Positions 1,970-64,000 of a stretch of 64,000 bases of DNA are shown in pieces. The stretch lies in NCBI RefSeq assembly GCF_020745735.1, contig NC_083416.1:79943131-80007130 (forward strand), given 5' to 3'. A model generated the notes under the pieces. The model was not told the origin of the DNA. It searched no databases and worked only from the letters and a program-made list of their open reading frames with translations. The DNA comes from Hemiscyllium ocellatum. Taxonomy: Eukaryota. The stretch's first letter is position 1, and each line of letters opens with the position of its first letter. The translations under genes and the position numbers were made by a program.

Positions 1970-4360
1970 ATGTCGACTCCACTGATTAGCCAGGTTTCCA
2001 TCATTTTTTCGCTATGCATTTCTGACCTGGTTTCCGAAAAGCTTCGCTACTCGATTCCCGAGGAAATGGAACGTGGAACCTTTGTTGGCAACGTCGCTGA
2101 CGATCTAGGATTAAAGGTTTGGGAATTATCAAGTCGCAAATTTCTGCTGATTTCTGATTACTCGAAGCAATTCATAGAGGTAAATGTAGAAAATGGTTTC
2201 TTGTTTGTTAATGAAAGAATCGACAGAGAACAGCTTTGTAGCAAAACCGCTGCATGTTCTCTCTTTTTCCAAATCACGCTTGCTGATCCTTTGGAAGTGT
2301 ATCCCGTTGAAGTGGAGATACGAGACATAAATGATAATTCACCCGTCTTTTCCAAAAAGGAATTCGATTTGCAAATCAATGAATTAAACGCGCTGGGAGC
2401 ACGTTTCCTTCTCGAGAGCGCGCGTGATCTGGACGTGGGTACAAATACAATCAACACATACCAGATCAGTCCGAACGAGCACTTCGGTATTAAAGTGCAG
2501 ACAAGAAGAGGTGGCAGTAAAAATGCCGAGCTGGTATTAAAGAGGTCTTTGGACCGTGAACAACAATCAATATTTACTCTGGTATTGACGGCTATCGATG
2601 GTGGGATTCCGCAGAGATCTGGCACAGCGCGGATCATCGTTAATGTCATGGACGCAAATGATAACTACCCCGTATTCGATCATGAAACTTACAGGACGTC
2701 AGTGCTAGAAAACATCGCGAATGGCTCTTTGGTGTTAAGGGTTCATGCTACTGATATAGATGAAGGAACAAACGCAGAGGTAACATATTCTTTCACACAT
2801 CACGTTAACCAAAATATTCGCGACTTGTTCAAATTGGACCCTGTGACTGGAGAGATTAGAGTTCAAGGAGTAATAGATTTTGAAGAAACAAATGCATATG
2901 AATTTGACATCCTGGCGGTGAATTCCGCTCCACCTGAATTGTCAGCCCATGCAAATGTTGCTATCGATGTCATTGACACTAATGATAATTGCCCTAACCT
3001 GCAAGTAACAATACTATCCAGTGCTGTGCAGGAAGATGCTGCTTCGGGGGTTAGTATAGCTCTGATCAGCGTAACGGATCGCGATTCTGGAGAATATGGG
3101 GAAGTTCAGTGTCAGATTCCAGACAGTATTCCGTTCAAGATCGAAAAATATCTGAAGGGCAACTACAAATTGATTACCGATGGCTTTCTGGATCATGAGA
3201 TTACCCCACTGTACAATATCTCCGTTTCAGCCTGGGACGGTGGATTTCCACCTCTTTCAATTAGTAAATCCATTGTGGTTTCAGTTATTGATGTAAATGA
3301 CAATGCACCTATATTTACTCAATCATCATATAACGTGTATCTGATGGAAAATAATACTCCCGGTGCTTCTATATTTGCTGTTAGTGCAAATGATGCTGAT
3401 TTGAATCAGAATGCGGAAGTATCTTATTCCATTTTAGACGATCAAAAGCACGAAATACCTTCTTCCGCGTACATCACGATTAACTCCAAAACCGGAAACA
3501 TTTACGCATTGCGCTCCTTCGACTATGAGCAACAGAAACATTTCCAGGTGGCAATTCAAGCTCAGGATGCTGGATCACCTCCACTGAGTAGCACTACCCT
3601 TGTAAACGTTATTATCCTGGATCAAAATGACAATGCACCCATTATTATTTCACCTTTAACTTGGAACACATCAGCAACAGTGGAGATCCTGCCCAAAGCA
3701 ACATCTCCAGGATACCTGGTCACCAAGGTACTTGCGTCTGACAAAGATTCTGGTCAGAACGCAAGGCTTTCCTACCAGTTATTGGAAGCCACTGACCCTG
3801 GCCTTTTTACTGTGGGACATCTCTCTGGAGAAATCAGAACAACACGAGCATTTAGTGATCAAGATATCAGTACAGAAAGATTGGTCCTCCGTGTGAAGGA
3901 TAATGGACAGCCAAGTCTTTCAACTACAGTTGCAATCTCATTTACCTTAATTACCAACGTAACTGAGAAATCGTTTGAACAAATTGATAAGCCTAGAAAA
4001 CTGGAATATTTTTCTGATATAAACAGCTACCTAATCATTATATTAGGATCAATTTCCTTTTTATTTCTCATGCTCATTGTTTGTTTGCTCATCCTGAAGT
4101 ATAGACAAGATAGAAATATTGCTGAAGATTACAGCCCCACTGTTTGTTGTTATCGTCAGGGTAATTCAGATGATGGCTTGAGTCGACCAACAGGACGCCA
4201 TCCTTTGAGTTATAGCGGGACCGTTCAGACTGAAACTTATCATTACAGTGTGTGTTTGTCACCAGAATCATCGAAGAGTGACTTTCTCTTTTTGAAACCT
4301 TGTCATCCTACGTTGCCTTTCAATGAAATGGTTGATCATGACAACAACGCAATGAACTAA
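1970..4360 (+). CDS. Clustered protocadherin variable exon (gene 1): signal peptide, 6 EC repeats, TM, cytoplasmic tail
   Basis: 796-aa intronless ORF with RYSIPEE start, EC1 C-X5-C (CSKTAAC), five DxNDNxP linkers, LDRE/DYE motifs, TM YLIIILGSISFLFLMLIVCLLIL and tail motif VCLSPESSKSDFLFLKPC; CSE 219 nt upstream. Confidence 0.97.
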   Translation: MSTPLISQVSIIFSLCISDLVSEKLRYSIPEEMERGTFVGNVADDLGLKVWELSSRKFLLISDYSKQFIEVNVENGFLFVNERIDREQLCSKTAACSLFFQITLADPLEVYPVEVEIRDINDNSPVFSKKEFDLQINELNALGARFLLESARDLDVGTNTINTYQISPNEHFGIKVQTRRGGSKNAELVLKRSLDREQQSIFTLVLTAIDGGIPQRSGTARIIVNVMDANDNYPVFDHETYRTSVLENIANGSLVLRVHATDIDEGTNAEVTYSFTHHVNQNIRDLFKLDPVTGEIRVQGVIDFEETNAYEFDILAVNSAPPELSAHANVAIDVIDTNDNCPNLQVTILSSAVQEDAASGVSIALISVTDRDSGEYGEVQCQIPDSIPFKIEKYLKGNYKLITDGFLDHEITPLYNISVSAWDGGFPPLSISKSIVVSVIDVNDNAPIFTQSSYNVYLMENNTPGASIFAVSANDADLNQNAEVSYSILDDQKHEIPSSAYITINSKTGNIYALRSFDYEQQKHFQVAIQAQDAGSPPLSSTTLVNVIILDQNDNAPIIISPLTWNTSATVEILPKATSPGYLVTKVLASDKDSGQNARLSYQLLEATDPGLFTVGHLSGEIRTTRAFSDQDISTERLVLRVKDNGQPSLSTTVAISFTLITNVTEKSFEQIDKPRKLEYFSDINSYLIIILGSISFLFLMLIVCLLILKYRQDRNIAEDYSPTVCCYRQGNSDDGLSRPTGRHPLSYSGTVQTETYHYSVCLSPESSKSDFLFLKPCHPTLPFNEMVDHDNNAMN

Positions 4361-4390
4361 TCTTTGCAGGCAATTAGATGCTCTGCGTGA

Positions 4391-4399
4391 CAGGTAATA
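4391..4399 (+). other. Putative 5' splice donor downstream of gene 1 stop
   Basis: CAG|GTAATA, GT at 4394, 33 nt after TAA; same position in genes 3-5. Confidence 0.6.
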
Positions 4400-5319
4400 C
4401 TTGCTGGCGAACAATTACTTACTCTGTGCTCATTTGTAGGTTAAACGTCCTGCTCACGCATTATTTAGTTGGTACTGCAAACATTAATGTACTCCAATTA
4501 ACAAGTACCCTTTGCCCGCTCCAGATGCATTCAATTACATTTATGCTTGTGTAAAAGTACAAAATTTAGAGCCATATTCTTAACATGAATGTTAAAATTC
4601 AATTTTGAACTTTTATTATTTATGGTTTGAAACAAAGAATTTCTGTATATTCATGTGCATGCAGTTAAATAAGGTAATGAAATCAAGTAATTGTGAGATG
4701 TTCTGAATTCCTCCCTGGAGTATTTCAGTAGTCTAAACTCATTTATTTTGAACAATCCCTATTTGTCCCAAAAAACCTGAAATTTCACATTAAACGATTA
4801 ATATATAAATGTTGTGACGAAGCCTGGGTTCAAGTCTGTGAAACAGTGATGGTTGCTAGTTGGATTTTTTTTTTGTTTTCATACAATTTGCATTAAATTG
4901 TCAGCTGTTGTGCATTTCGCTGTCTTCTCATCCGTTCGTTCTTCGAACGTCTGATGGATTTGCTTAGCCACAAATAGCTGCACACTCACCAAAGATGTTC
5001 AGTTATTATAATGTCGAGCCTTTAGCTGGCATTATGAAACGTTTCACTGTTACATTGTAAACCCATGAAGAAGGGAAAGTCTATTCTTTTCTCCAACATC
5101 AAAGTCTTAAGCAATGCTTAAACATGCTACTTATACAGCTATAACCCAATAATTTATTATTTCTGTAACATCAGCCCCAGACAATCTAAATAATGTCCTC
5201 GGCTCAGAGATCTTCATTTGCTTCATTAACATATCTCCCTCTTGGATAAATCCAGAAGTGGGTACGTTTGCTAATGTTTGTGCAAATTTCAGCACATTTC
5301 TGAAGTATACCTGGCACCG

Positions 5320-10450: not shown

Positions 10451-12627
10451 TTATTTCAGATGTGAGTTTGAAATCCACCATGGCAGATGTGGAAATGCAA
10501 ATTCAATAAAAGTGCACATCTGGGATACAAAGCTGTTGTAAGGGTGACCATTTCGCCACTCTTACTTGTTTTAAATTTCTTTTGGTTCATTTATACATTT
10601 CATGGAAGGAAATTTGCCATACTCATTTAATCTGCTCTGGCCTCCATATGACTCCAGACTCTTAACTGTCTGCGGGGAAATTCAAAAAGAGCTATAAATA
10701 GTGGGCTAACCCATGACTGTGAAGTATTGTGAATGAATAAATGAGTTAATAATAATGATAATAATAACAAACTTTTAACAAAACCGATGGATTGACAGTG
10801 CAACAGGAAATACGTAAGTGTGATCTTCGAGCCATCGGACAGATGGAGCTGTGAGATAGGAAAATTAGGACCTGGGTATTCAAGATTACAATACATTTAA
10901 GAAGAACAGAATGATAGGTAAGGACTGAGGTGTATTTCTGTTAGTTGGAATCTCACCAATATACAGCAGCGTGATTGTCTCAGTACTTGAAATTAAGATG
11001 TCAAATTATTTTTTTCTGGAAATGAGAAATAAGAAAGGTTAAATGTAACATTTTGCACTGTTTCATAGACCCCCTAGCATTAACAACTCTGTAACTCTGT
11101 AACATTTAGTAGGGACTTGCGAGTGAAGCAGGCCAATAAACATGGAAGAGTTTTGTTTTACGTACAGATTTGATTAATCAGCTTAGCAACAGTAGCCTTG
11201 GTGATCAGTTAGTAGAGTTGCGCCGACAGTTACCCAGGGCCAATGGGCCAGTACTACGCTGCAATGCTCTGCTCTGTGTTCCAGAGTTCTTCAGACATCT
11301 TTGTAAGAGAAACGCCTATAGACCTAAGCAGGCAGCAGGCAATTTTTCGGTTATTGGTATGAACTTGTTAGAAATTAGCAGAAGAGACATTTGAAGACCA
11401 ATCACAAATGATTACAGGTGCCAGAAGCTAGAAATGCTATATCATCTAGCCTGATACGAAGCTTTCAATGTACAGACGACATCATATTAATAGGTATCAT
11501 CATGCAAGTGAGAACGGATGATCACTATATATTTTTAGTTTGTAAAAACTAATAAAATAACAACATATTCACAACTCTTTCATTTAACAAGCACTTATTT
11601 CATTTTCAGCAATTCTTATTCTGGCTAGGAAGTTCAATGGATTTCTGCTAATGTATTTGTACTGAAAACAAAAATCATAATGAAGGTTTAAAATATTAAA
11701 TTGATCGAAACTGCATATTATCCCAATTGATAAAGTTTATTTTGGCAGAAAACGTATTGTCAGAAGATAATTTTATTGACAGTCAGTTTGTGCATTTCAC
11801 TTAAGAAAGAAACAACATGAGTCAAGTATTTCGCCGAAATCATGAGTAGGTTGTGCAGCATAAAGATCTGAGGTTAACGAGAGGCATCTGAAAAACACAA
11901 CTCAATTCACATAATCCAATTATGATTACTAGACAGCAAGCATTGTCATGTCATGGGCTTCTTCCTATCCACCAGAAATCTTGTGACACAAACATAGATT
12001 TAAATGGCTTGAAAGGATACAAGATACTATGGAGTGTTAATGTGTGCATGCTATAATGTTACTTTGCAAGTTGTCGACAAATTAGATGTGTAATGCTTGC
12101 TTTATGTGTTTTCTCTTTAAATAGGTACTCAATAGTTAAAGCGTTACCTCATTATTCTGGAATCATTCTGTTGTTACCCTGGCAAAGAATCAACCTGGTG
12201 TTTCTAGCACTACAGCACTATTTCAATATTCACACTGTGTAAGTCATTAACGATTATAAGATTTACATTCCACATTTTTGAAACATGTCGATGTTTGGCA
12301 GGTATATACTCTACAACGCATTTTGCCATAATCATAGCTGTTTCACCAGTTCAAATATTGTCAAGTATTCTTTTTTTGAAAGAAACATTATGGGAAGCCT
12401 CTTGTATTAGTGTGACAAAACAATTTATAGATAAGTCCAGAAAATACTGAAAATGCTCAGTATCTGTGGCTGCAGAGTCAGAGCTGACATTGTGTGATAA
12501 GTTGAAATAAAACTGGACATTGCTCGAAATATATCAGCTTATACGTTGTGGAATTAATTGACATGCAATTTGAGTCCAGGTGCAGCTGAATGTGTCGCAG
12601 TAAGACATTCTAAATAACTACTGATTT

Positions 12628-12897: not shown

Positions 12898-13399
12898 TAG
12901 ATTAGATAATTTAAAACAATATGTAAAGGATTAACTTAATGACCTCAACCTAAATGCCAATTAGTATGCACACACCCTAAAGGTAAGCGAAGTCAAAGTT
13001 CAAAGACTGAACATGAAGTTTGATGATTGAATCTTTAATTATTTGTCAATGGGCAGGATCTACCTCCACTTATTTATCTTACATTAACCAAATAAACTGT
13101 TTATTAAACGTTCATTGCACAAAAGAAAACTATATAAACTTATTTATGTCAAAATAAAAATTAAAATGTTCGATCAGCAAAATTTAACACGTGAAAATGT
13201 GGCAACGTAAAACTGGTAATTAGTGATACCACAAACGTATTCCAGGAAATGTAATATTTTTTAATGCATGTCATACCTTAAGTTAGACGAACGTGTAATT
13301 GCACAATACACATAAATTATTGTACCTGCTAATTAGATTTTGGTTGCACACTTCTAAATGTATACAGTTTTCAGAAGGAGTGCAGCTTTAAGGCCGTTT

Positions 13400-13446
13400 G
13401 TTGCAGTTATTGGTTGCGACACTTTGTGTCGCTGTCCGCCAATAAG
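13400..13446 (+). promoter_or_regulatory. CSE/CTCF site plus CCAAT, gene 2 promoter
   Basis: TGCAG 13402, CGCT 13430 (28-nt offset), CCAAT 13439; conserved although the flanks are unrelated to the other genes. Confidence 0.9.
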
Positions 13447-13669
13447 GAGCTGAAACAGCGGTCGAGATCTACCCACCTCCTCTCGCAGGGATTGAAGAAG
13501 AAGATTGGTAATGTTCGAAACAGACTGTCGCTCCACTAATGCTGAAAGGACGTGTTACGAAGAGCTTGAATTTCTATCTCGCGCGTTTGTGTTAGAAATT
13601 AGATGAGATTGCCCTTCCTTTCAGAGGCGATAGAGGTAACTATTAGTGATTTAAAAATCAGAAAGAGCA

Positions 13670-25286: not shown

Positions 25287-25333
25287 GCTGCAGTTATTGT
25301 TTGAGGCTGTTCGTGTCGCTGTCTACCAATAAG
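25287..25333 (+). promoter_or_regulatory. Orphan CSE/CTCF site upstream of Pcdh relic A
   Basis: TGCAGTTATTG 25289, CGTGTCGCTGTCTACCAAT with CGCT 25317; same 28-nt offset. Confidence 0.82.
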
Positions 25334-29076: not shown

Positions 29077-31476
29077 ATGACAATGGCGACTGTTGTGATG
29101 AGCCGAGTGTCCATTTTTTTGCTCTGCATTTCTGCCCTGGTTTCCGAACAACTTCGCTACTCGATTCCCGAGGAAATGGAACATGGAACCTTTGCTGGCA
29201 ACGTCGCTGACGATCTAGGATTAAGGGTTTGGGAGTTACCGACTCGCAAATTACTGCTGATTTCTGATTACTCGAAGAAATACATGGAGGTAAATGTAGA
29301 AAATGGTTTCCTTTTTGTTAATGAAAGAATCGACAGAGAACAGCTTTGTAGCAAAACCGCTGCATGTTCTCTTTCTTTCCAAATCACGCTCTATGATCCT
29401 TTGGAAATGTATCCCGTTGAAGTGGAAATACTAGACGTAAATGATAATTCACCCGTCTTTTCGAGGAAGGAATTCGATTTGCAAATTAATGAGTTAATTG
29501 CGCCGGGCGCTCGCTTCCCTCTCGAGAGCGCACGTGATCTGGACGTGGGTAAAAACACAATCAACACCTACCAGATCAATCCGAACGAGCACTTCGGTAT
29601 TAAAGTGCAGACAAGAAGAGGGGGGAATAAAAATGTCGAGCTGATATTAAAGAGGCATTTGGACCGTGAACAACAGTCAATGTTTACTCTAGTGTTGACG
29701 GCTATCGATGGTGGGATTCCGCAGAGATCTGGCACAGCGCGGATCATCATTAATGTCATGGACGCAAATGACAACACACCCGTATTCGATCATGAAACCT
29801 ACAGGGCGTCAGCGATTGAAAACATTGCGAATGGCACTTTAGTGCTAAGAGTTCATGCTACTGATATTGATGAAGGGACAAACGCGGAGATAACATATTC
29901 TTTCACTCATTACGTTTCCCAGAATATTCGTGATTTGTTCAAATTGGATCCTGTGTCTGGAGAAATCAGAGTTCGAGGTGTACTAGATTTTGAAGAAACA
30001 AATGTTTATGAATTTGACGTTCAAGCAATGAACTCCGCTCCACCTGAATTCTCAACTCTTGCAAATGTTGTCATTGATGTAATTGACACTAATGATAATA
30101 CTCCTGTGTTGCAAGTTACGATGGTGTCCAGTGCTGTGCGGGAAGATTCTTCTTCGGGAATTAGTGTAGCTCTGATCGGCGTCACGGATCGCGATTCTGG
30201 CGAATATGGGGAAGTTCATTGTCAAATCCCAGAGAATATTCCCTTCAAGATTGAAAAATCTTTGAAGGGCAACTACAAGTTGATTACCAATGGCTTTCTG
30301 GATCATGAGATTACCCCACTGTACAACATCTCCATTTCAGCCTGGGACGGTGGATTTCCTCCTCTTTCAGCGAGTACATTAATTGTGGTTTCAGTAATTG
30401 ATGTCAATGATAATTCACCAAGTTTTACGCAGTCGTCATATAACGTTTATCTGATGGAGAATAACGCACCCGGTGCTTCTATATTTGCTGTTAGTGCAAA
30501 TGATGCTGATTTGAATCAGAATGCAGAAGTCTCTTATTCCATTGTCGACAATCGACAGAAAGAAGAAATACCTTCCTCTGCGTACTTTACGATGAACTCC
30601 AAAAATGGGAACATTTACGCGCTTCGCTCCTTCGACTACGAGCAACAGAAACATTTCCAGGTGAAAGTTCAAGCTCAGGATAGTGGGTCGCCTCCATTGA
30701 CCAGCACTGCCTTTGTGAATGTTATTATTTTGGATCAAAATGACAATGCACCCATTATTGTTTCACCTTTAACATGGAACAGCTCAGCAATAGTGGAGGT
30801 AATACCCCTTTCAACATATCCAGGATATCTGGTCACCAAGGTAATTGCCACGGATGAAGACTCTGGTCAGAACGCAAGGCTTTCCTACGAGTTATTGGAA
30901 ACCACTGATCCAAGTCTTTTTACTGTTGGACATCTCTCTGGAGAAATTAGAGCAACGCGAGCATTTAGTGATCAAGATATCATTGACGTGCGCGTGGTCC
31001 TCAGCGTGAAGGACAATGGACAGCCGAGCCTTTCCAGCAGGGCCACAATATCCTTTATCGTAAAGTCCAATGTTACTGAGAAATCATTTGAACAACGTGA
31101 TGGACCCAGACACTCGGAATATTTTTCAGGTATAAATAGTTATCTAATCATAATTTTCGGATCCACTTCCTTTTTGTTTCTCATAATAATATTATTTTTG
31201 CTCACCCTGAAGTGCAGACAAGATAGAAATACTGCTGAAATTTATAGCTCTGCAGTCTGTTGTTGTAATGGGGGAAATTCGACTGATGCCTTTAATCGGA
31301 CACCAACAGGAAGGGATCCTTTGAATTATAGCGGGGCAGTTCAGACCGGAAGTTATCATTACAGTGTGTGCTTGTCACCGGAATCATCGAAGAGTGACTT
31401 TCTGTTTTTAAAACCTTGTCATCCTACGTTGCCTTTCAACGATCGGAGTGTTCGTGACAGCAACGCAAGAAACTAA
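29077..31476 (+). CDS. Clustered protocadherin variable exon (gene 3)
   Basis: 799-aa ORF, 6 EC + TM + tail; close paralog of genes 4/5; the start may be the second ATG (29083). Confidence 0.97.
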   Translation: MTMATVVMSRVSIFLLCISALVSEQLRYSIPEEMEHGTFAGNVADDLGLRVWELPTRKLLLISDYSKKYMEVNVENGFLFVNERIDREQLCSKTAACSLSFQITLYDPLEMYPVEVEILDVNDNSPVFSRKEFDLQINELIAPGARFPLESARDLDVGKNTINTYQINPNEHFGIKVQTRRGGNKNVELILKRHLDREQQSMFTLVLTAIDGGIPQRSGTARIIINVMDANDNTPVFDHETYRASAIENIANGTLVLRVHATDIDEGTNAEITYSFTHYVSQNIRDLFKLDPVSGEIRVRGVLDFEETNVYEFDVQAMNSAPPEFSTLANVVIDVIDTNDNTPVLQVTMVSSAVREDSSSGISVALIGVTDRDSGEYGEVHCQIPENIPFKIEKSLKGNYKLITNGFLDHEITPLYNISISAWDGGFPPLSASTLIVVSVIDVNDNSPSFTQSSYNVYLMENNAPGASIFAVSANDADLNQNAEVSYSIVDNRQKEEIPSSAYFTMNSKNGNIYALRSFDYEQQKHFQVKVQAQDSGSPPLTSTAFVNVIILDQNDNAPIIVSPLTWNSSAIVEVIPLSTYPGYLVTKVIATDEDSGQNARLSYELLETTDPSLFTVGHLSGEIRATRAFSDQDIIDVRVVLSVKDNGQPSLSSRATISFIVKSNVTEKSFEQRDGPRHSEYFSGINSYLIIIFGSTSFLFLIIILFLLTLKCRQDRNTAEIYSSAVCCCNGGNSTDAFNRTPTGRDPLNYSGAVQTGSYHYSVCLSPESSKSDFLFLKPCHPTLPFNDRSVRDSNARN

Positions 31477-31504: not shown

Positions 31505-31513
31505 CAGGTAATT
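31505..31513 (+). other. Putative 5' splice donor downstream of gene 3 stop
   Basis: CAG|GTAATT, GT at 31508, 31 nt after TAA. Confidence 0.6.
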
Positions 31514-34500
31514 CTTGATGAATAATTACGTATTATGTTTTCAAGTGTAGAGTCCGAGTCACTGGTATACAGACAGGACTTTCATATTGATATTGGAAAA
31601 CTTATTGCACACGTTTCTCATTCCTGTTGCCGTCCTGCCAGAGGTTCTATAACAGTTATCCTTGTTTCATAATCTAATTTTTTTTCTGCTTTGAAAGTAT
31701 TTCTTTACCTGAAAATTATTACAATTTTTGCTTCCCCCCCCCCCCATCCTTTTAATGTTTCTGATTTTGATAACTGCTGTTTAAAAGTTTCAGAAGGCCA
31801 ATATTCCAACGGTGTCGAAAACCATTTACTTTGAACAGCTTGTATTTCTCTTCTCTTTGAAGACCGGAGGGCACCTTCATTTCAACGAATTGCAGGGAAG
31901 AAGACATTAATTTTGGACTTGAGAGTGCTCTGTGAAACAGTGATCCGAGAACAATATGTTAAAGTGTCAACTGTGGTTAATTTCACAGGTTTCTTACCAG
32001 ATTATCCCTCCAACGTCTGTCCGTTGTGCGCAACACGCTCGATGCGCTGCATGGCTGTTTATCCGTTGATGTGTTGGCCTTTGCTCCCCCACACAGCATA
32101 TCCGGCAATAGTTCACAATTACCCACTTTCACATCTTGGAGGATTGTTTGCGCTAGCCTCTAATTTAGAAGCTTCAAATCACAATCCAAAGCTTCTAAAC
32201 ATAAAATGCAAGCTGCATGTCGCGTGTAATTGAAATAGCGTGCTATACTGTTCGTGATGCGCAGCTCTGGTTCACAATAATACTTGGTATACGTTCAAAA
32301 GGAAATCCTATTTGTGATCCCATCTATGTCAAACCATTCCGACGCCACCGTTTCAAAGATTAGTTGAGTGTCCTTGTCACTATTCATGCCGACCTCAGTA
32401 AAACAATGATTAACTTTCTCTTGCCCCGCAGTTGTTTGTGGGATGGTAGAATCATAGACCCGGATATTACAGAAGAAGCCATTCAGCCATCGAATCTATC
32501 CAGCCATAAAATATACTAAATCTACACTCGCTCCACTTTCCAGCACTCGGCCCTGAACTTTGAATGTTATGATACTTCAAGTGTTCATCCAAGTACTGTT
32601 TTAAATGTTGTGAGATTACCATTGAAAGTTAACCTCGCAAGCAATTGATGTCAAAATTCGTCATACCACCATGTTATTTTCATTTGAAAGATTCGGACCT
32701 TTCATCAGAGGAATGTATTGTGAAATCACAATTTCTTCTCTGCTTTAACTATTGTTTTATGTTATCAAGTGGTTAATGCTTTGGACGTTATTAGTATTTT
32801 CCGGCTAATGTTCACTTATTAGTAAAATAGTTTTGAAATTGATATTGAGCAGGTGAATGTTTCATGTCCGCACCACAAGAAGCAGTATTTCAGAGTTTAC
32901 AACCACAATGTCCCTTATCTGTAATGCAGACCGACCACCGTTTTAGAGATATGTTAATTGTATCCATCAATGTCTTCCTGCCGGCTTACTGATTCTTTCA
33001 GCAGGCAACTATTTTGCTCTTCTGTTAAACGAACTGAGAAAGGAAGAACTGTTACATTGCTCACAGAGAGTCTGAAAAAACATAGCGACACTTTATAATA
33101 AGACTGGGATATTTAACAAAGTACAGACTGTTTTCATCTAATAATAAAAAATAATGAATTCAGACTTTCACCTCATGATTTTGACTGTTTGGTGGCACAT
33201 AAATTTAGATAGTCAGGAACTGAAGTACACTGCACTTCAAAAGCCAAATTTGAGGGATATCGTGGAACTTTTGTTTACAAATTTCACGATACCCCACCTT
33301 AAGCTTATTAAACGAAAGACTCGATGCTACCCAATTGTCCTTACACATGTGTTGTGTTGCTTCTGTCGTTGAGGTCTCAGAGATAAAGCTGTGCATCGTG
33401 AAATTTGAATACAAAAACGGTTCCACGATTTACTTCACCACGGCGGTAGGGCCATTGATGAAGTAGCTGAAGGTCAGTATTGACGATGATAGTGACGGCC
33501 TCTTGCTGGATTTTTTTCCATTTATTTCATTTAATTTTGTTCCAGCGTTCACTGAATTTCACTTGAGGATCTCTTTTGCCTAATCGCGATTGTTTTCAAT
33601 TTCCATAGAGCTTCTTAGTTCTATATTCGGAAAATGCAGCATTGCTATCAATCATGGCAGTTTATTTATCTCACCTTTTGAATGATGATGCTCGGTCAGA
33701 TTTAAACATTAGTTGTAAAGTTTAGCAGAGGGAGTGATGCTTGCAGAATCCTCACTTTGTCCCACGCATAGATTTGCTAATGAACAACTGTTCCTTAGTC
33801 CCACGACTGATGACAGGTTCCATTACCCTGATCCTGAATTATAGGTAGACCAACAGGGTGGGAGTTGGCTGGGTTGTGCTGCTTGTTTGAACAGAGCCAA
33901 TCGAGACAATTTTTCACATAGATGCTCGCCGTGTAGACGGTCTAAGGAAATTAAGGCCAGGGTGCATATTGTTTAAACGAAATATAGATGTCTTCCACGC
34001 TAGCTGAGGGTTTTGTCTGGTGCAATATCGGTCGCGTGTCCAGTGTGCGGTTTTATTACGTAGTGTCTCAAAGAGAGAATGCAATGTGTAAAATATTGTC
34101 CTGGACAGGAGTATTGATTTCAGCAAGATAAATGAGCAAACGTTAATTACTTACTTACGCTGATCATCATGGAGAATGAAAAATAAACGAAAGAAAGAGA
34201 AATATTTTATTTAAATATCACACCTTCATTTTTCAAAGTTTTTCAAAATCTTTAGAGCAAAACACACAGTTTTGTTCAATTTGGGAGACATTTATTGCTC
34301 GTCCCTAGTTGACCTTGAGAAGGCGCTGGTGAACTACATTCTTGAACTACTGCAGTCCATGCATTGTAGGTAGGCTCACAATATCACTCAGAACAGAATT
34401 TCATGATTTTGACGCAGCGACTGTGTTTGGCGACGTATTTCCAAATCAGGAAGACGACAGCCCTTGGAGAAAAACATGCAGGCCGTGGTGTCTCCAAACT

Positions 34501-46981: not shown

Positions 46982-46990
46982 CAGGTAATT
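46982..46990 (+). other. Putative 5' splice donor downstream of gene 4 stop
   Basis: CAG|GTAATT, GT at 46985, 31 nt after TAA. Confidence 0.6.
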
Positions 46991-49900
46991 CTTGATGAAT
47001 AATTACGTATTATGTTTTCAAGTATAGAGTCAGAGTCACTGGTATACAGCCAGGATTTTCAAATTGATATTGGAATACTTATTGCATAAGTTTCTCATTC
47101 CTGTTGCCATCCTGCCAGGGGTTGCATAATAGTTATCCTTGTTTCATAATCTAATTGTTTTCTGCTTTGAAAGTATTCCTTTACCTGGACGTTATTATAA
47201 TTTTTGTTTCTCACCCCCATCACCCCCCCAGCCCCCCAACAATCCTTTTAATGTTTCTGATTTTGATAACTGCTGTTCAAAAGTTTCAGAAGGCCAATAT
47301 TCTAACGGTATCGAAAACGATTTATTTTGAACAGCTTGTATTTCTCTTCTCTTTGAAAACCGGAGGGCAGCTTCATACCAACGCATTGCAGGGAAGAAGA
47401 CATTAATTTTGGACTTGAGAGTGCTCTGTGAAACAGTGATCAGAGAAGAAGATGTTATTTTTTGCAATCATACGCGTTAAGGTGTAACTGTGGTTAATTT
47501 CACAGAATTCTTACCAGATTATCCCTCCAACGTCTTTCCATAGTGCGCAATACGCTCGATGCTCTGCATGGCTTGTTTATCTTTTGATGAGGGCTCATGT
47601 GTTGGCCTTTCCTCCCCCACACAGCATATCTGGCGATAGTTCACAATTAATCACTTTCGAATCTCGGAGGAATATTTCAGCTAGCCTCGAATTTAGAAAA
47701 TTTAAATCATAATCCAAAGCTTCTAAACATAAAATGCAAGCTGCATGTCGCGGTCGTTCAAATGGCGAGATATACTGTTCGTGATGCCCAGCTCTGGAAA
47801 ACAAAAATACTTAGCATGCGTTAAAAAGGAAATCCTATTTTTGATCTCATGTATATTAAACCGTTCCTATGACACTATTTCAAAGAATACTAGAGTGTCC
47901 TTGTCACTATTCATCCCGAAATCTGTAAAACGCTGATTAACTTTCTCTTGCCTCGTAGCTGTTTGTGACATGGTAGAATCATAGAACCGGGTATTACAGA
48001 AGAGGCCATTCAGCCATCGAGTCTATCCAGCCAAAAAATAAATACTCGCTCCACTTTCCAGTAATAGGCCTGAACTTTGAATGTTACGATACTTCAAGTG
48101 TTCATCGAAGTAGTTTTCAATGTTGTGAGATTACCGTCGAAAGTTAACCTCGCAAGCAATTGATGTCAAAATTCGTCACACCACCATGTTATTTTCATTT
48201 GAATGGTTCGGCCTGAGTCGAAAAGCTCTTTTACGGACTCTGAATCAGAGAAATGTATTGTGAAATCACAATTTCTTCTCTGCTTTAACTATTGTTTGAT
48301 GTTATCAAGTGGTTAATGCTTTGGACGTTATTAGTATTTTCCGGTTAACGTTCACGTATTAATAAAATAGTTTGGAAATTGATATTGAGAAGGTGAATGT
48401 TTCATGTCCGCACCACAAGAAGCAGTATTTCCGAGTTTACAACCACAGTGTCCCTTATCTGCAATGCAGACCGACCACCGTTTTAGAGATATGTTTATTG
48501 TATCTATCAATGTCTTCCTGTCGGCTTACTGATTCTTTCAGCAGGCTGCTCTTCTGTTAAGCGAACTGAAAATGGAAGAACTGTTACATTGCTCACAGAG
48601 AGTCTGGGCAAACGTAGCGACACTGTATAATAAGTCCGGGATATTTAACATAGTACAGATTATTTTCATCGAATAATCGAAATTAAAGAATTCAGACTTT
48701 GTGCTCTCATGATTTTGACTGTTTGGTGGCACATAAATTTAGACAGTCAGGAACCGATATGCACTGCACTTCAAAAGCCTAATCTGAGATAAATCGTGGA
48801 AATTTCCTTTCCAGATTCCACGATACACAACCTTAAGCTTGTTAGACGAAAGTCTTGATGCTACTCAATTGTCGTTACACATGTGTTGTGTTGCTCCTGT
48901 CGTCGAGGACTCAGGAATAAAGCTGTGCATCGTGGAATTTGAATTAAAAAAAGGTTCCACGATTTACTTCATCACGGCGGGAGGGCCATTGATGAAGTAG
49001 CAGATGGTCAGTACTGACAATTATTGTGATGGCCTCTTGCCGATTTTTCCCGGGGTGAAAATGTTTGACGCATTTCATTTAATTTTGTTCCAGCGTTCAC
49101 TGAATTTCACTTGAGGATCTCTTTTACGTAATCGCGACTGTTTTCAGTTTCCATATAGATTCTTCGTTCTATATTCGGAGGACATCTATATTTCGTTGCT
49201 ATCAATCAGGACAGTTTATTCATCTCACCTTTTGAATGACGAACGCTCGGTCAGATTTAAATATTAGTTGTAAAGTTTAGCAGAGGGAGTGATGCTTGCA
49301 GAATCCTCACTCTGTACCACGCATAGATTTGCCAATGAAAAACTGTTGCTTAGTCCCACGACTGATGACAGATTCCATTCCCCTGATCCTGAATTATAGG
49401 TAGACCAACAGGGTGGGAGTTGGCTGGGTTGTGCTGCTTGTTTGAACAGAGTCAATCGAGACAATTTTTCACATAGATGTTAGCAGTGTAGACGGCCTAA
49501 GGAAATTAAGGCCAGGGTGCATATTGTTAAAACGAAATATAGATGTCCTCCATGCCAGCTGAGGGTTTTGTCTGGTGCAAAATCGGTCACGTGTCCAGTG
49601 TGCAGTTTTATTACGGAGTGTCACAAAGAGAGAATGCAATGTGTAAAATCTTGTCCTGGGCAGGAGTAGTGAGTTCAGGAAGATTAGTGAGCAAACTTTA
49701 ATTACTTACTGAATGGCTTTCTCGCTGCTCATCATGGAGAATGGAAAATAAATGAAAGAGAAATATTTTACTTAAATATCGCACCTTCATTTTTCCAAGT
49801 TTTTCAAAATCTTTAGAGCAAAACACACAGTTTTGTTCATTTTGGGAGACATTTATTGCTCGTCCCTAGTTGCCCTTGAGAAGGTGGTGGTGAACTACCT

Positions 49901-59928: not shown

Positions 59929-62331
59929 ATGACAATGGGGACTGTTCTGATGAGCCGAGTGTCCATCATTTTTTTGCTCTGCATTTCTGCCCTTGTTTCC
60001 GAACAACTTCGCTACTCGATTCCCGAGGAAATGGAACGTGGAACATATGTTGGCAACGTAGCTGATGATCTAGGATTAAAGGTTTGGGAATTATCGAGTC
60101 GCAAATTTCTTCTGATTTCTGATTACTCGAAGAAGTACATGGAGGTAAACGTAGAAAATGGTTTCCTCTTTGTTAATGAAGGAATCGACAGAGAACAGCT
60201 TTGCAGCAAAACCGCGGCCTGTTCTCTCTCTTTCCAAATCACGCTCGATAATCCTTTGGAAATGTATCCCGTTAAAGTGGAGATACTAGACGTAAATGAT
60301 AATTCACCCGTCTTTTCGAGGAAGGAATTCTATTTGCAAATCAATGAGTTAATTGCGCCGGGCGCTCGCTTCCCTCTCGAGAGCGCGCGTGATCTGGACG
60401 TGGGTACAAACACAATCCACACATACCAGATCAATCCGAACGAGCACTTTGATATTAAAGTGCAGACAAGAAGAGGAGGCAGTAAACGGGCCGAACTGGT
60501 ATTAAAGAGATCTTTGGACCGTGAACAACAGTCAATGTTTACTCTGGTATTGACAGCCATCGATGGTGGGATTCCGCAGAGATCTGGCACAGCGCGGATC
60601 ATCATTAAGGTCATGGACGCAAATGATAACGCCCCCGTATTCGATCATGAAACTTACAGGACGTCAACGGTAGAAAACACCGTGAATGGCTCTTTGGTGC
60701 TAAGAGTTCATGCTACTGATATTGATGAAGGGACAAACGCGGAGGTAACATATTCTTTCACCCACGACGTTTCCCAGAATATTCGTGATTTGTTCAAATT
60801 GGATCCTGTGTCTGGAGAAATCAGAGTTCGAGGTGTACTAGATTTTGAAGAAACAAATGTTTATGAGTTTGAAGTCCAAGCAATGAACTCCGCTCCACCT
60901 GAATTGTCAAATCTTGCAAATGTTGTCATCGATGTTGTTGACACTAACGATAATCGTCCTGTTTTGCAAGTTACGATGGTGTCCGGTGCTGTGCGGGAAG
61001 ATGCTTCTTCGGGAATTTGTATAGCACTGATCAGCATCACGGATCGTGATTCTGGCGAATATGGGGAAGTTTATTGTGAGATCCCAGAGAATATTCCCTT
61101 CAAGATTGAAAAATCTTTGAAGGGCAACTATAAGTTGATTACCAATGGCTTTCTGGATCATGAGATTACCCCACTGTACAACATCTCCATTTCAGCCTGG
61201 GACGGTGGATTTCCTCCTCTTTCAGCAAGTAAATTCATTGTGGTTTCAGTAATTGATGTCAATGATAATTCACCAAGTTTTACGCAGTCGTCATATAACG
61301 TGTATCTGATGGAGAATAACGCTCCCGGTGCTTCTATATTTGCAGTTAGTGCAAATGATGCTGATTTGAATCAGAATGCGGAAATTTCTTATTCCATTGT
61401 CGATAATCGACAGAAAGAAGAAATACCCTCCTCTGCGTACTTTGCGATGAACTCCAAAAATGGGAACATTTATGCGTTGCGCTCCTTCGACTACGAGCAA
61501 CAGAAACATTTCCAGGTGAAAGTTCAAGCTCAGGATGCTGGGTCGCCTCCATTGACCAGCACTACCTTCATGAACGTTATTATTTTGGATCAAAATGACA
61601 ATGCACCCATTATTCTTTCACCTTTAACATGGAACAGCTCAGCAACAGTGGAGGTAATGCCCCATTCAACATATCCAGGATATCTGGTCACCAAGGTAAT
61701 TGCCACGGATGAAGACTCTGGTCAGAACGCAAGGCTTACCTACGAGTTATTGGAAACCACTGATACTAGTCTTTTTACTGTTGGACATCTCTCCGGAGAA
61801 ATTAGAGCAACGCGAGCATTTAGTGATCAAGATATCATTGACGTGCGCGTGGTCCTCTGCGTGAAGGACAATGGACAGCCGAGCCTTTCCAGCAGCGCCA
61901 CAATATCCTTTATCGTAATGTCCAATGTTACTGAGAAATCATTTGAACAACGTGATGAACCCAGACACTCGGAATATTTTTCAGGTATAAATAGTTATCT
62001 AATCATAATTTTCGGATCCACTTCCTTTTTGTTTCTCATAATAATATTATTTTTGCTCACCCTGAAGTGCAGACAAGATAGAGATACTGCTGAAATTTAT
62101 AACTCTGCAGTCTGTTGTTGTAATGGGAGAAATTCGACTGATGGCTTTAATCGGACACCAACAGGAAGGGATCCTTTGAATTATAGCGGGGCAGTTCAGG
62201 CCGGAAGTTATCATTACAGTGTGTGCTTGTCACCGGAATCATCGAAGAGTGACTTTCTGTTTTTAAAACCTTGTCATTCTACGTTGCCTTTCAACGATCG
62301 GAGTATTCATGATAGCAACGCAAGAAACTAA
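59929..62331 (+). CDS. Clustered protocadherin variable exon (gene 5)
   Basis: 800-aa ORF, 6 EC + TM + tail; tandem duplicate of genes 3/4. Confidence 0.97.
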   Translation: MTMGTVLMSRVSIIFLLCISALVSEQLRYSIPEEMERGTYVGNVADDLGLKVWELSSRKFLLISDYSKKYMEVNVENGFLFVNEGIDREQLCSKTAACSLSFQITLDNPLEMYPVKVEILDVNDNSPVFSRKEFYLQINELIAPGARFPLESARDLDVGTNTIHTYQINPNEHFDIKVQTRRGGSKRAELVLKRSLDREQQSMFTLVLTAIDGGIPQRSGTARIIIKVMDANDNAPVFDHETYRTSTVENTVNGSLVLRVHATDIDEGTNAEVTYSFTHDVSQNIRDLFKLDPVSGEIRVRGVLDFEETNVYEFEVQAMNSAPPELSNLANVVIDVVDTNDNRPVLQVTMVSGAVREDASSGICIALISITDRDSGEYGEVYCEIPENIPFKIEKSLKGNYKLITNGFLDHEITPLYNISISAWDGGFPPLSASKFIVVSVIDVNDNSPSFTQSSYNVYLMENNAPGASIFAVSANDADLNQNAEISYSIVDNRQKEEIPSSAYFAMNSKNGNIYALRSFDYEQQKHFQVKVQAQDAGSPPLTSTTFMNVIILDQNDNAPIILSPLTWNSSATVEVMPHSTYPGYLVTKVIATDEDSGQNARLTYELLETTDTSLFTVGHLSGEIRATRAFSDQDIIDVRVVLCVKDNGQPSLSSSATISFIVMSNVTEKSFEQRDEPRHSEYFSGINSYLIIIFGSTSFLFLIIILFLLTLKCRQDRDTAEIYNSAVCCCNGRNSTDGFNRTPTGRDPLNYSGAVQAGSYHYSVCLSPESSKSDFLFLKPCHSTLPFNDRSIHDSNARN

Positions 62332-62359: not shown

Positions 62360-62368
62360 CAGGTAATT
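62360..62368 (+). other. Putative 5' splice donor downstream of gene 5 stop
   Basis: CAG|GTAATT, GT at 62363, 31 nt after TAA. Confidence 0.6.
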
Positions 62369-64000
62369 CTTGATGAATAATTACGTATTATGTTTTCAAG
62401 TATAGAGTCAGAGTCACTTGTATACAGACAGGACTTTCATATTTATACTGGATAGATTATTGCACAATTTCTCATTCCTGTTGCCATCCTGCCAGGTGTT
62501 GTATAATAGCTATCCTTGTTTCATAATCTAATTTTTTTCTGCTTTGAAAGCATTTCTTCACCTGGAAGTTATTACAATTGTTGTTTCTCATCATCCCCCA
62601 CCCCCACCACAACCACCAATCTTTTTAATGTTCCTGATTTTGATAACTGCTGTTCAAAAGTTTCAGAAGGCCAATATTCTAACGGTATCGAAAACCGTTT
62701 ACTTTGAACAGCTTGTATTTCTCTTCTCTTTGAAGACCGGTGGACACCTTCATACCAACGCATTGCAGGAAAGAAGACATTAATTTTGGATTTGAGAGTG
62801 CTTTGTGAAACAGTGATCAGAGAACAAGATGTTATTCTTTTGCAATCATACGCGTTAAGGTGTCAACTGTGGTTAATTTCACAGAATTCTTGCCAGATTA
62901 TTCATCCAACGTCTGTCCGTTGTGCGCAATACGCTCGATGCACTACATGGCTTGTTTATCTTTTGATGTGGGCTCCCCCACACAGCATATCTGGCGATAG
63001 TTCACAATTAATCACTTTCGAATCTCGGAGGAATATTTGCGCTAGCCTCGAATTTAGAAAATTTAAATCATAATCCAAAGCTTTTAAACATAAAATGCAA
63101 GCTGCATGTCGCGGTCTTTCAAATGGCGAGATATACTGTTCGTGATGCCCAGCTCTGGATAACAAAGATACTTAGCATGCGTTAAAAAGGAAATCCTATT
63201 TTTGATCTCATGTATATCAAACCGTTATATGACACTATTTCAAAGAATGCTACAGTGTCCTTGTCACTATTCATCCCGAAATCAGTAAAACACTGATGTG
63301 TTTTACTGATTAACTTTCTCTTGCCTCGTAGCTGTTTGTGGCATGGTAGAATCATAGAAACGTGTATTACCGAAGAGGCCATTCAGCCATCGAGTCTATC
63401 CCGCCAAAAAAAATACTCGCTCAACTTTCGAGCAATTGGCCCTGAACTTTGAATGTTTCGATACTTCAAGTGTTCATCGAAGTAGTTTTCAATGTTGTGA
63501 GATTACCGTCGAAAGTTAACCTCGCAAGCAATTGATATCAAAATTCGTCACACCACCATGTTATTTTCATTTGAATGTTTCGGCCTGAGTCGAAAAGCTC
63601 TTTTGCGGCCTCTTAATCAGAGAAATGTATTATGAAATCACAATTTCTTCTCTGCTTTAACTATTGTTTTATGTTATCAGTTGGTTAATGCTTTGGACAT
63701 TATTAGTATTTTCCGGCTAACGTTCACGTGTTAATAAAATAGTTTGGAAATTGATATTGAGAAGGTGAATGTTTCATGTCCGCACCACAAGAAGCAGTAT
63801 TTCAGAGTTTACAACCACAGTGTCCCTTATCTGTAAAGCAGACCGACCACCGATTTAGAGTCATGTTTATTGTATCTATCAATGTCTTCCTGTCGGCTTA
63901 CTGATTCTTTTAGCAGGCTGCTCTTCTGTTAAGCGAACTGAAAATGGAAGAACTGTTACATTGCTCAGCGAGTGTCTGGGCAAACGTAGCGACACTGTAT

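Follow-up and report, generated by a model that had tools for sequence, protein, structure and literature searches.

Why would a gene whose protein is complete within one large exon carry a splice donor just behind its stop codon? The question is raised by a 64,000-nucleotide (nt) stretch of the Hemiscyllium ocellatum genome (NCBI RefSeq assembly GCF_020745735.1, contig NC_083416.1, positions 79,943,131 to 80,007,130 of the forward strand), which was analyzed as a whole and is called the window here. It holds five intact + strand clustered-protocadherin open reading frames (ORFs) of 796-801 amino acids (aa) each, and in four of them the stop codon is followed 31-33 nt later by the 5' splice site motif CAG/GTAAT. 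The most likely account, judged from comparison with other cartilaginous fish, is that this motif is an old variable-exon donor lying behind an ancient stop codon, kept in some sharks and lost in others. We further propose that, where kept, the inherited donor might be used for local splicing within the 3' untranslated region (UTR), a tentative reading to which we assign a probability of about 45%. The genes and their post-stop elements are as follows.

1970 to 4360, + strand: gene 1, epsilon-type ORF of 796 aa with Pfam domains, TAA at 4358-4360; the exact protein is annotated in GCA_020745735.1
4361 to 4393, + strand: gene 1 non-coding spacer of 33 nt, within which TGA forms another in-frame stop
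4391 to 4399, + strand: gene 1 post-stop donor motif CAG/GTAATA, GT at 4394, 6.6 bits
13670 to 16075, + strand: gene 2, epsilon-type ORF of 801 aa from a different subfamily, no post-stop donor
29077 to 31476, + strand: gene 3 ORF, 799 aa, with Pfam domains
31505 to 31513, + strand: gene 3 post-stop donor CAG/GTAATT, GT at 31508, 8.2 bits
44551 to 46953, + strand: gene 4 ORF, 800 aa
46982 to 46990, + strand: gene 4 post-stop donor CAG/GTAATT, GT at 46985
59929 to 62331, + strand: gene 5 ORF, 800 aa
62360 to 62368, + strand: gene 5 post-stop donor CAG/GTAATT, GT at 62363

The coordinates and sequences of these sites, with TAA followed after 33 nt (gene 1) or 31 nt (genes 3-5) by the donor, are exactly those given in an earlier note on this DNA. 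Donor scores were taken from a rough position-weight matrix drawn from general knowledge, not from MaxEntScan, and on that scale the consensus reaches 12.4 bits, compared with 8.2 bits for CAG/GTAATT and 6.6 bits for the gene 1 site. In gene 2 the best donor-like site within 60 nt after the stop scores 0 bits, and none of at least 6 bits occurs before +572. An in-frame donor upstream of the stop, which the earlier note had regarded as damaging to its own idea, did not turn up: the last 60 nt of the five window ORFs contain no usable one (best 3.0 bits), and the best in the same region of the other species' genes scores 4.8 bits. Since the spacer measures 31, 32 or 33 nt among relatives, it does not code for protein. 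A stop codon within 50-55 nt of the last exon junction escapes nonsense-mediated decay (NMD). The stop and the would-be junction are 31-33 nt apart here, within that limit as the earlier note had said, so splicing at these sites would not be expected to trigger NMD.

Could such a motif be there by chance, without history or function? Donor-like 9-mers of at least 7 bits occur about once per 800 nt, even inside ORFs, and the window itself supplies fewer independent observations than it seems to. Because genes 3-5 are recent copies, it amounts to two semi-independent donor observations only, and since genes 1 and 3 have kept 76% identity at fourfold degenerate sites, the 8-mer they share is unremarkable alone; the main support comes from other species. 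On the other side, CAGGTAAT is present in five + strand copies where base composition predicts ~1.3, and four of the five are the post-stop sites. A donor of at least 8 bits is found in 3.8% of random 60-nt intergenic windows. Chance is further disfavored by the cross-species alignment described below, in which the same 8-mer recurs at the same offset in two shark orders, and we regard it as very improbable. The fifth + strand copy of CAGGTAAT lies at 947-954, ~1 kb upstream of gene 1, in seemingly repeat-derived sequence.

We place the five genes among the epsilon-type clustered protocadherins of cartilaginous fish on the basis of their closest named elephant-shark matches, Pcdh epsilon 8, 9 and 14 (P0069, P0073, P0108; 54-59% identity). 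The closest proteins of any name are ~800-aa models from sharks and rays labelled 'protocadherin-10-like' or 'gamma-A-like'. A place between the delta and mu subclusters would be a further mark of the epsilon type. All five ORFs align end to end and have the layout of clustered protocadherins, with an N-terminal Cadherin_2, six cadherin repeats, a transmembrane segment and a juxtamembrane Cadherin_C_2 in one ~2.4 kb exon; a Pfam scan of genes 1-3 returned Cadherin_2, five Cadherin matches and Cadherin_C_2 per ORF. As is also typical of the clustered family, they form a tandem array in which each gene has its own CGCT-box promoter: the box GTGTCGCTGTC, followed by CCAAT, lies at 1747, 13426, 28862, 44335 and 59712, ~215-245 nt before each ATG. 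Fourfold-site identity identifies genes 3-5 as recent tandem copies (0.91-0.95), gene 1 as an older paralogue (0.76 to gene 3) and gene 2 as distant (0.44). The protein collection contains exact entries for the products of genes 1 and 2 but not for those of genes 3-5, and further CGCT-box and CCAAT cores with no ORF behind them are located at 25313, 40326 and 55691, one per repeat unit.

The position of the stop codon ahead of the donor is ancient. In shark and ray relatives the protein always ends at one place, ...SPESSKSDFLFLKPCHPTLPFND..NAR(N/K) followed by the stop, and elephant-shark epsilon proteins extend 4 to a dozen residues further. No common C-terminal tail was found among the chondrichthyan relatives of ~800 aa. 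The proteins thus end in the variable exon with no coding constant exon, as expected of the epsilon type, and a tblastn search of the window and the fetched loci with a gamma constant region and other tails found no match outside the ORFs. The earlier note's description of these products as complete, beta-like proteins therefore holds. In the constant-exon tree published by Jiang et al. 2009 (PMC2764143), the types represented are alpha, gamma, delta, mu and nu, and the missing epsilon entry fits an epsilon type that has no coding constant exons.

How old, then, is the donor? We compared DNA of whale shark (L003), the sharpnose sevengill shark Heptranchias (L004, L006, L007), smalltooth sawfish (L005), elephant shark (L002) and a skate-like contig (L001), which contains promoter and upstream DNA and is hence genomic rather than a transcript. 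The protein tree unites gene 1, the whale-shark gene and genes 3-5 in a clade with 100/100 support whose nearest relatives are sevengill genes A, B and C, and gene 2 groups with sevengill gene E (HpeE) and Callorhinchus genes. Sevengill gene B has TAA, 32 nt and CAG/GTAATT, the same 8-mer at the same offset as in Hemiscyllium, and the donor is therefore older than the split between Heptranchias and the carpet sharks (Hemiscyllium, whale shark). On at least three occasions elsewhere in the subfamily the donor has been inactivated, with the ORF intact in each case. The whale-shark orthologue reads CAG/ATAATT (CAGATAAT) and sevengill gene C (HpeC) reads CAG/ATATTT (CAGATATT), both with G>A at +1, and in sevengill genes A and D a 7-8-nt deletion takes out GGTAATT. 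No donor lies near the stop in gene 2, sevengill gene E, the sawfish gene or the skate gene.

In six elephant-shark epsilon paralogues a donor-like ATG/GTAAGT or GTAACT stands 43-55 nt past the stop. This motif differs between paralogues at +1, +4 and +5 and does not stand out from other windows of the flank, and the post-stop blocks of the sharks and the elephant shark share no significant sequence similarity, which means that homology of the two sets of sites cannot be shown. A complete mini-intron, consisting of GT, pyrimidine tract and TAG, was considered behind the donors and rejected; it would measure 43-46 nt in the sharks, probably too short to splice, and 67 nt in the elephant shark. 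Three details of the Callorhinchus locus are recorded here: a 12-nt indel shifts the stop between paralogues (TGA vs TAA), AATAAA is conserved ~60 nt ahead of the CGCT box of the following gene in 5/6 spacers, and the paralogue with its stop at 12484 has lost both the donor-like GT and the AG of a pyrimidine-tract...TAG site 67 nt downstream. In Heptranchias, L004 13971-14072 is a duplicated relic of the last 100 nt and 3' flank of gene A, 1.6 kb downstream of that gene.

Conservation of the motif was measured against fourfold degenerate sites, at which gene 3 and whale shark are 0.80 identical and Hemiscyllium and Heptranchias 0.58-0.60. Rates are given as Fitch changes per site on an 8-taxon tree.

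Fourfold degenerate sites: 1.13 changes per site
Spacer between stop and donor: 1.80 changes per site, at or above the neutral rate
Donor 8-mer CAGGTAAT: 0.38 changes per site
Next 42 nt after the donor 8-mer: 1.36 changes per site
Further downstream of those 42 nt: 1.56 changes per site

The donor 8-mer is the most conserved of 73 flank windows, with 3 changes where ~9 are expected, and the next non-overlapping window has 8. Where a lineage has retained the GT, no change is seen at any of the six donor positions beside it; a rough estimate from the fourfold rate would predict ~4-5. We read these data as genuine constraint on the donor motif, though on one that can be dispensed with. Conservation of the 90-nt post-stop block as a unit was also considered and rejected: a BLAST match between gene 1 and sevengill gene B reaches +92, but only the 8-mer evolves below the neutral rate.

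The same data bear on a simpler explanation, namely that the donor is an unused fossil of an ancestral variable exon, passed over by transcripts that run through it and end locally, and preserved because shark DNA evolves slowly. Neutral divergence is indeed low, with fourfold identities of 0.76 (gene 1 vs gene 3), 0.80 (gene 3 vs whale shark) and 0.58 (gene 1 vs sevengill gene B). Intact genes get by without the site: in whale shark, sevengill genes C and D (HpeD) and the skate gene there is no donor of at least 6 bits within 600 nt of the stop, and the long donor-free stretch behind gene 2 and the variability of the elephant-shark motif point the same way. This explanation sits poorly with the depressed rate of the 8-mer and with the unchanged flanking positions, and a strong donor placed ahead of an acceptor that figures in a RefSeq model (see below) would be hard for the spliceosome to ignore. 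We consider it somewhat unlikely that the donor is wholly unused.

Alternatively, the constraint could act on something other than splicing. CAG(G/A)TAAT might serve as a protein-binding motif in DNA or RNA, with a homeodomain-type TAAT core, or as a U1 site that modulates 3'-end formation, its likeness to a donor being secondary. In two independent lineages only the G at +1 has changed, to A, and the rest of the motif is largely kept, and a second conserved island, GGCGAAyAATT(T)AC, follows the 8-mer. Its longer form, TGGCGAAyAATT(T)ACTTA, occupies 4404-4421, 10-27 nt after the gene 1 donor, and recurs behind the stop of the donor-less sawfish gene (L005 12421-12439; local alignment p ~0.006); it could be a separate conserved 3'-flank element. 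Against this, the position of the motif fits the end of a variable exon, and RNA structure lends no support: single-sequence folds give z-scores of -0.66 to +1.25, none of them significant, and there is no Rfam match. A hairpin pairing GTAATT with AATTAC over the donor was rejected, since it shows one apparent compensatory pair but its consensus reaches only -1 kcal/mol. We judge a non-splicing role quite improbable.

Our preferred reading, local use of an inherited donor, can be put as a sequence of proposed steps. Each of the five genes has its own CGCT-box promoter and one 2.4-kb exon encoding the whole protein, and the GT sites would be the original variable-exon 5' splice sites, now preceded by the ancient stop. 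The donor lies ~32 codon-lengths after the SDFLFL motif, close to the point at which an exon of alpha/gamma type would finish; in a gamma-A protein the variable exon runs 39 residues past the EFNFL motif. Selection would have held on to the donor in gene 1, genes 3-5 and sevengill gene B, while in other lineages it was knocked out cleanly, leaving the ORF unharmed. Where it survives, its splicing partner would be non-coding sequence close by and not a single shared constant exon. In genes 3-5 it might be joined to an acceptor 331-350 nt downstream, generating a private 3'-UTR intron and a local terminal exon; in gene 1 it could possibly be joined to a small exon ~0.8 kb downstream. The sites concerned are the following.

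31823 to 31838, + strand: gene 3 putative local acceptor catttactttgaacag, next exon from 31839; putative intron 31508-31838, 331 nt
47319 to 47334, + strand: gene 4 putative local acceptor; putative intron 46985-47334, 350 nt
62696 to 62711, + strand: gene 5 putative local acceptor; putative intron 62363-62711, 349 nt
4740 to 4755, + strand: gene 1 copy of the conserved 16-mer at the local acceptor (CATTTATTTTGAACAA), AA replacing the AG of genes 3-5
5175 to 5261, + strand: possible small non-coding exon behind gene 1, flanked by a good acceptor (AG ending at 5174) and by donor TGG/GTACGT with GT at 5262

Evidence for the acceptor of genes 3-5 comes from a C. punctatum RefSeq model, 'gamma-A1-like' isoform X2 (P0005, 739 aa), which leaves the large exon at ...SEFFS and continues with ACISLLFEDRRAPSYQRIAGKK.... 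This tail translates directly behind ttgaacag at 31838, 47334 and 62711 and at the homologous whale-shark site, with 95% identity at the gene 3 site. The donor used by X2, TTTTCAG/GTATAA, lies inside the ORF (GT at 31130, 46607 and 61985) and is weak and lineage-specific. Since its tail is not conserved as protein among genes 3-5, X2 splicing is probably cryptic; if the local acceptor works, the much stronger post-stop donor 331-350 nt upstream would be its natural partner. X2 leaves the ORF just before the transmembrane segment and is predicted to be a secreted ectodomain without an anchor, and a sevengill-shark model (P0064, 683 aa) also terminates right behind ...SEYFS.

For gene 1, the relevant model is C. 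plagiosum LOC122556972 (P0123, 1716 aa), a fusion of the gene 1 and gene 2 orthologues. Its linker maps to 5189-5263, 12392-12484 and 13366-13506, the last including the gene 2 promoter, before it enters gene 2, and the part that falls on 5175-5261 is 88% identical. The model also implies a small leader intron in gene 2, with donor AAGATTG/GTAATG (GT at 13508) and acceptor aaaaatcag ending at 13659. Further chained models are a 4556-aa H. ocellatum product, a 3235-aa Callorhinchus product and Ensembl P0084, and all such chains may reflect read-through transcription or gene-predictor artefacts. The 4556-aa product, annotated for the gene upstream of gene 1, ends with a TAA at 1898-1900, inside the gene 1 5' leader, and an acceptor, ctcgtctgcag at 1856, precedes this end (region 1846-1900); it could be a chained gene model or else the result of read-through splicing that reaches that leader. 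In every other case seen, the annotated gene ranges equal the length of the coding sequence and are uninformative on UTR exons.

Several observations weigh against continued local use of the donor. Half of the subfamily lineages (3/6) have disabled the GT, a frequency close to what neutrality predicts for these two positions, and the other epsilon subfamilies sampled have no donor at all. In the two lineages with G>A, the remainder of the motif is almost unchanged, a pattern that fits a non-splicing CAGRTAAT as well. In the comparison of genes 3-5 with whale shark, identity over the first 100 nt after the stop is 0.72 and 0.55, where other intergenic DNA stands at ~0.72; a flank at neutral level is also what an unused donor would leave. 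The conserved 16-17-nt island taken here as the local acceptor may not be one: sevengill gene B matches ACTCATTTATTTTGAAC at 17/17 positions at +210 to +226, and the AG of the island is AA in gene 1 and GG in gene B. Finally, the RefSeq models are perhaps partly ab initio, and P0123 is a two-gene fusion.

Where would the transcripts end? Within 2.4 kb downstream of genes 3-5 and the whale-shark gene, we found no conserved AATAAA or ATTAAA. Just one hexamer resembling a poly(A) signal is kept in register across these genes, namely CATAAA, at +724 to +775, with the following copies.

32200 to 32205, + strand: CATAAA, gene 3
47728 to 47733, + strand: CATAAA, gene 4
63089 to 63094, + strand: CATAAA, gene 5

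As a variant hexamer, it is a weak candidate for a local 3'-end signal. Measured against the beta type, which has no donor and a local 3' end, gene 2 is donor-less and genes 1, 3, 4 and 5 have a donor, and CATAAA is the only indication of a local 3' end.

The earlier note had drawn a different conclusion from the post-stop donors: that they are spliced cluster-wide to one non-coding exon outside the window, the constant region having become 3' UTR. Several features are compatible with such an exon. The donor stands at the expected place and is partly constrained, the distance from stop to junction never exceeds 55 nt (31-33 nt in sharks, 43-55 nt for the elephant-shark donor-like sites), a conserved canonical poly(A) signal is missing over the 2.4 kb just described, and RefSeq and Ensembl models that chain neighboring epsilon exons in four species hint at read-through transcription. 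As a cluster-wide arrangement it is not supported: the donor is missing from intact genes, among them gene 2 of the same array, the orthologue in whale shark, three paralogues in the sevengill shark and two genes of batoids. The acceptor hints from P0005 and P0123 point to nearby sites and not to one distal exon, no shared downstream exon or constant-region homology was seen in the window or the fetched loci, and a constant region of several exons would place junctions >50 nt past the stop, inviting NMD. A narrower version, in which only the donor-bearing epsilon exons are still spliced to a shared non-coding exon, or to the constant exons of the next subcluster, with the donor-less paralogues already free-standing beta-like genes, is in our estimate improbable. 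The data neither call for nor point to a shared non-coding constant exon.

Local splicing from an inherited donor would set the window genes beside several known systems. Variable exons of Pcdh-alpha and Pcdh-gamma resemble them in the large first exon, the CGCT-box promoter, the 5' splice site at the 3' end and its comparable juxtamembrane distance; there the ORF stays open through the donor into three coding constant exons, whereas in genes 1, 3, 4 and 5 it stops 31-33 nt before the donor. Introns of the 3' UTR that are insensitive to NMD have the same geometry, with the stop 31-33 nt before the putative last junction, but the putative donor in the window seems to have been inherited from a coding-exon boundary, not newly arisen. 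The elephant-shark Pcdh-epsilon genes (B0YN63, B0YN64, B0YN69) are alike in domain order, length (~800 aa) and sequence; they likewise end their ORF in the large exon soon after SPESSKS(D/E)FL(F/Y)LKP, share no C-terminal peptide and have a donor-like site behind the stop, and they differ in species and subfamily and in having post-stop blocks that are not significantly homologous. The elephant-shark Pcdh-epsilon subcluster was reportedly described by Yu et al. in 2008 (PNAS 105:3819). We found no description of an epsilon transcript in the literature searched, which left that article out. The third arrangement proposed in the earlier note thus stands as regards complete proteins and falls short as a novelty, since it matches in part the published Pcdh-epsilon subcluster. 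Pcdh-beta genes of mammals, lizard and coelacanth are also alike in having a one-exon protein, no constant cytoplasmic domain, a tandem array and their own promoters (PMC7811963, PMC2764143); they are not orthologous to the window genes and are described as plain single-exon genes, in contrast to the donor just behind the stop in 4/5 window genes. Bony vertebrates have been treated as lacking the epsilon type (PMC2764143).

How beta-type genes without a constant region arose from spliced variable exons, through loss of splicing ability or through loss of the constant exons, has been posed as an open question (review, PMC7811963). If the post-stop donor is unused, our finding would be a small evolutionary footnote; if a shared non-coding exon did exist, it would offer a view, in living species, of how single-exon protocadherin clusters arise. 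Judged by their sequences, the shark epsilon genes look like the loss-of-splicing route to beta-type genes caught part-way, an intermediate stage with a stop just before an intact, partly constrained donor and with sister copies from which the donor is gone. These donor-plus and donor-minus paralogues would constitute a natural series on how 3'-UTR splicing affects expression or isoform choice.

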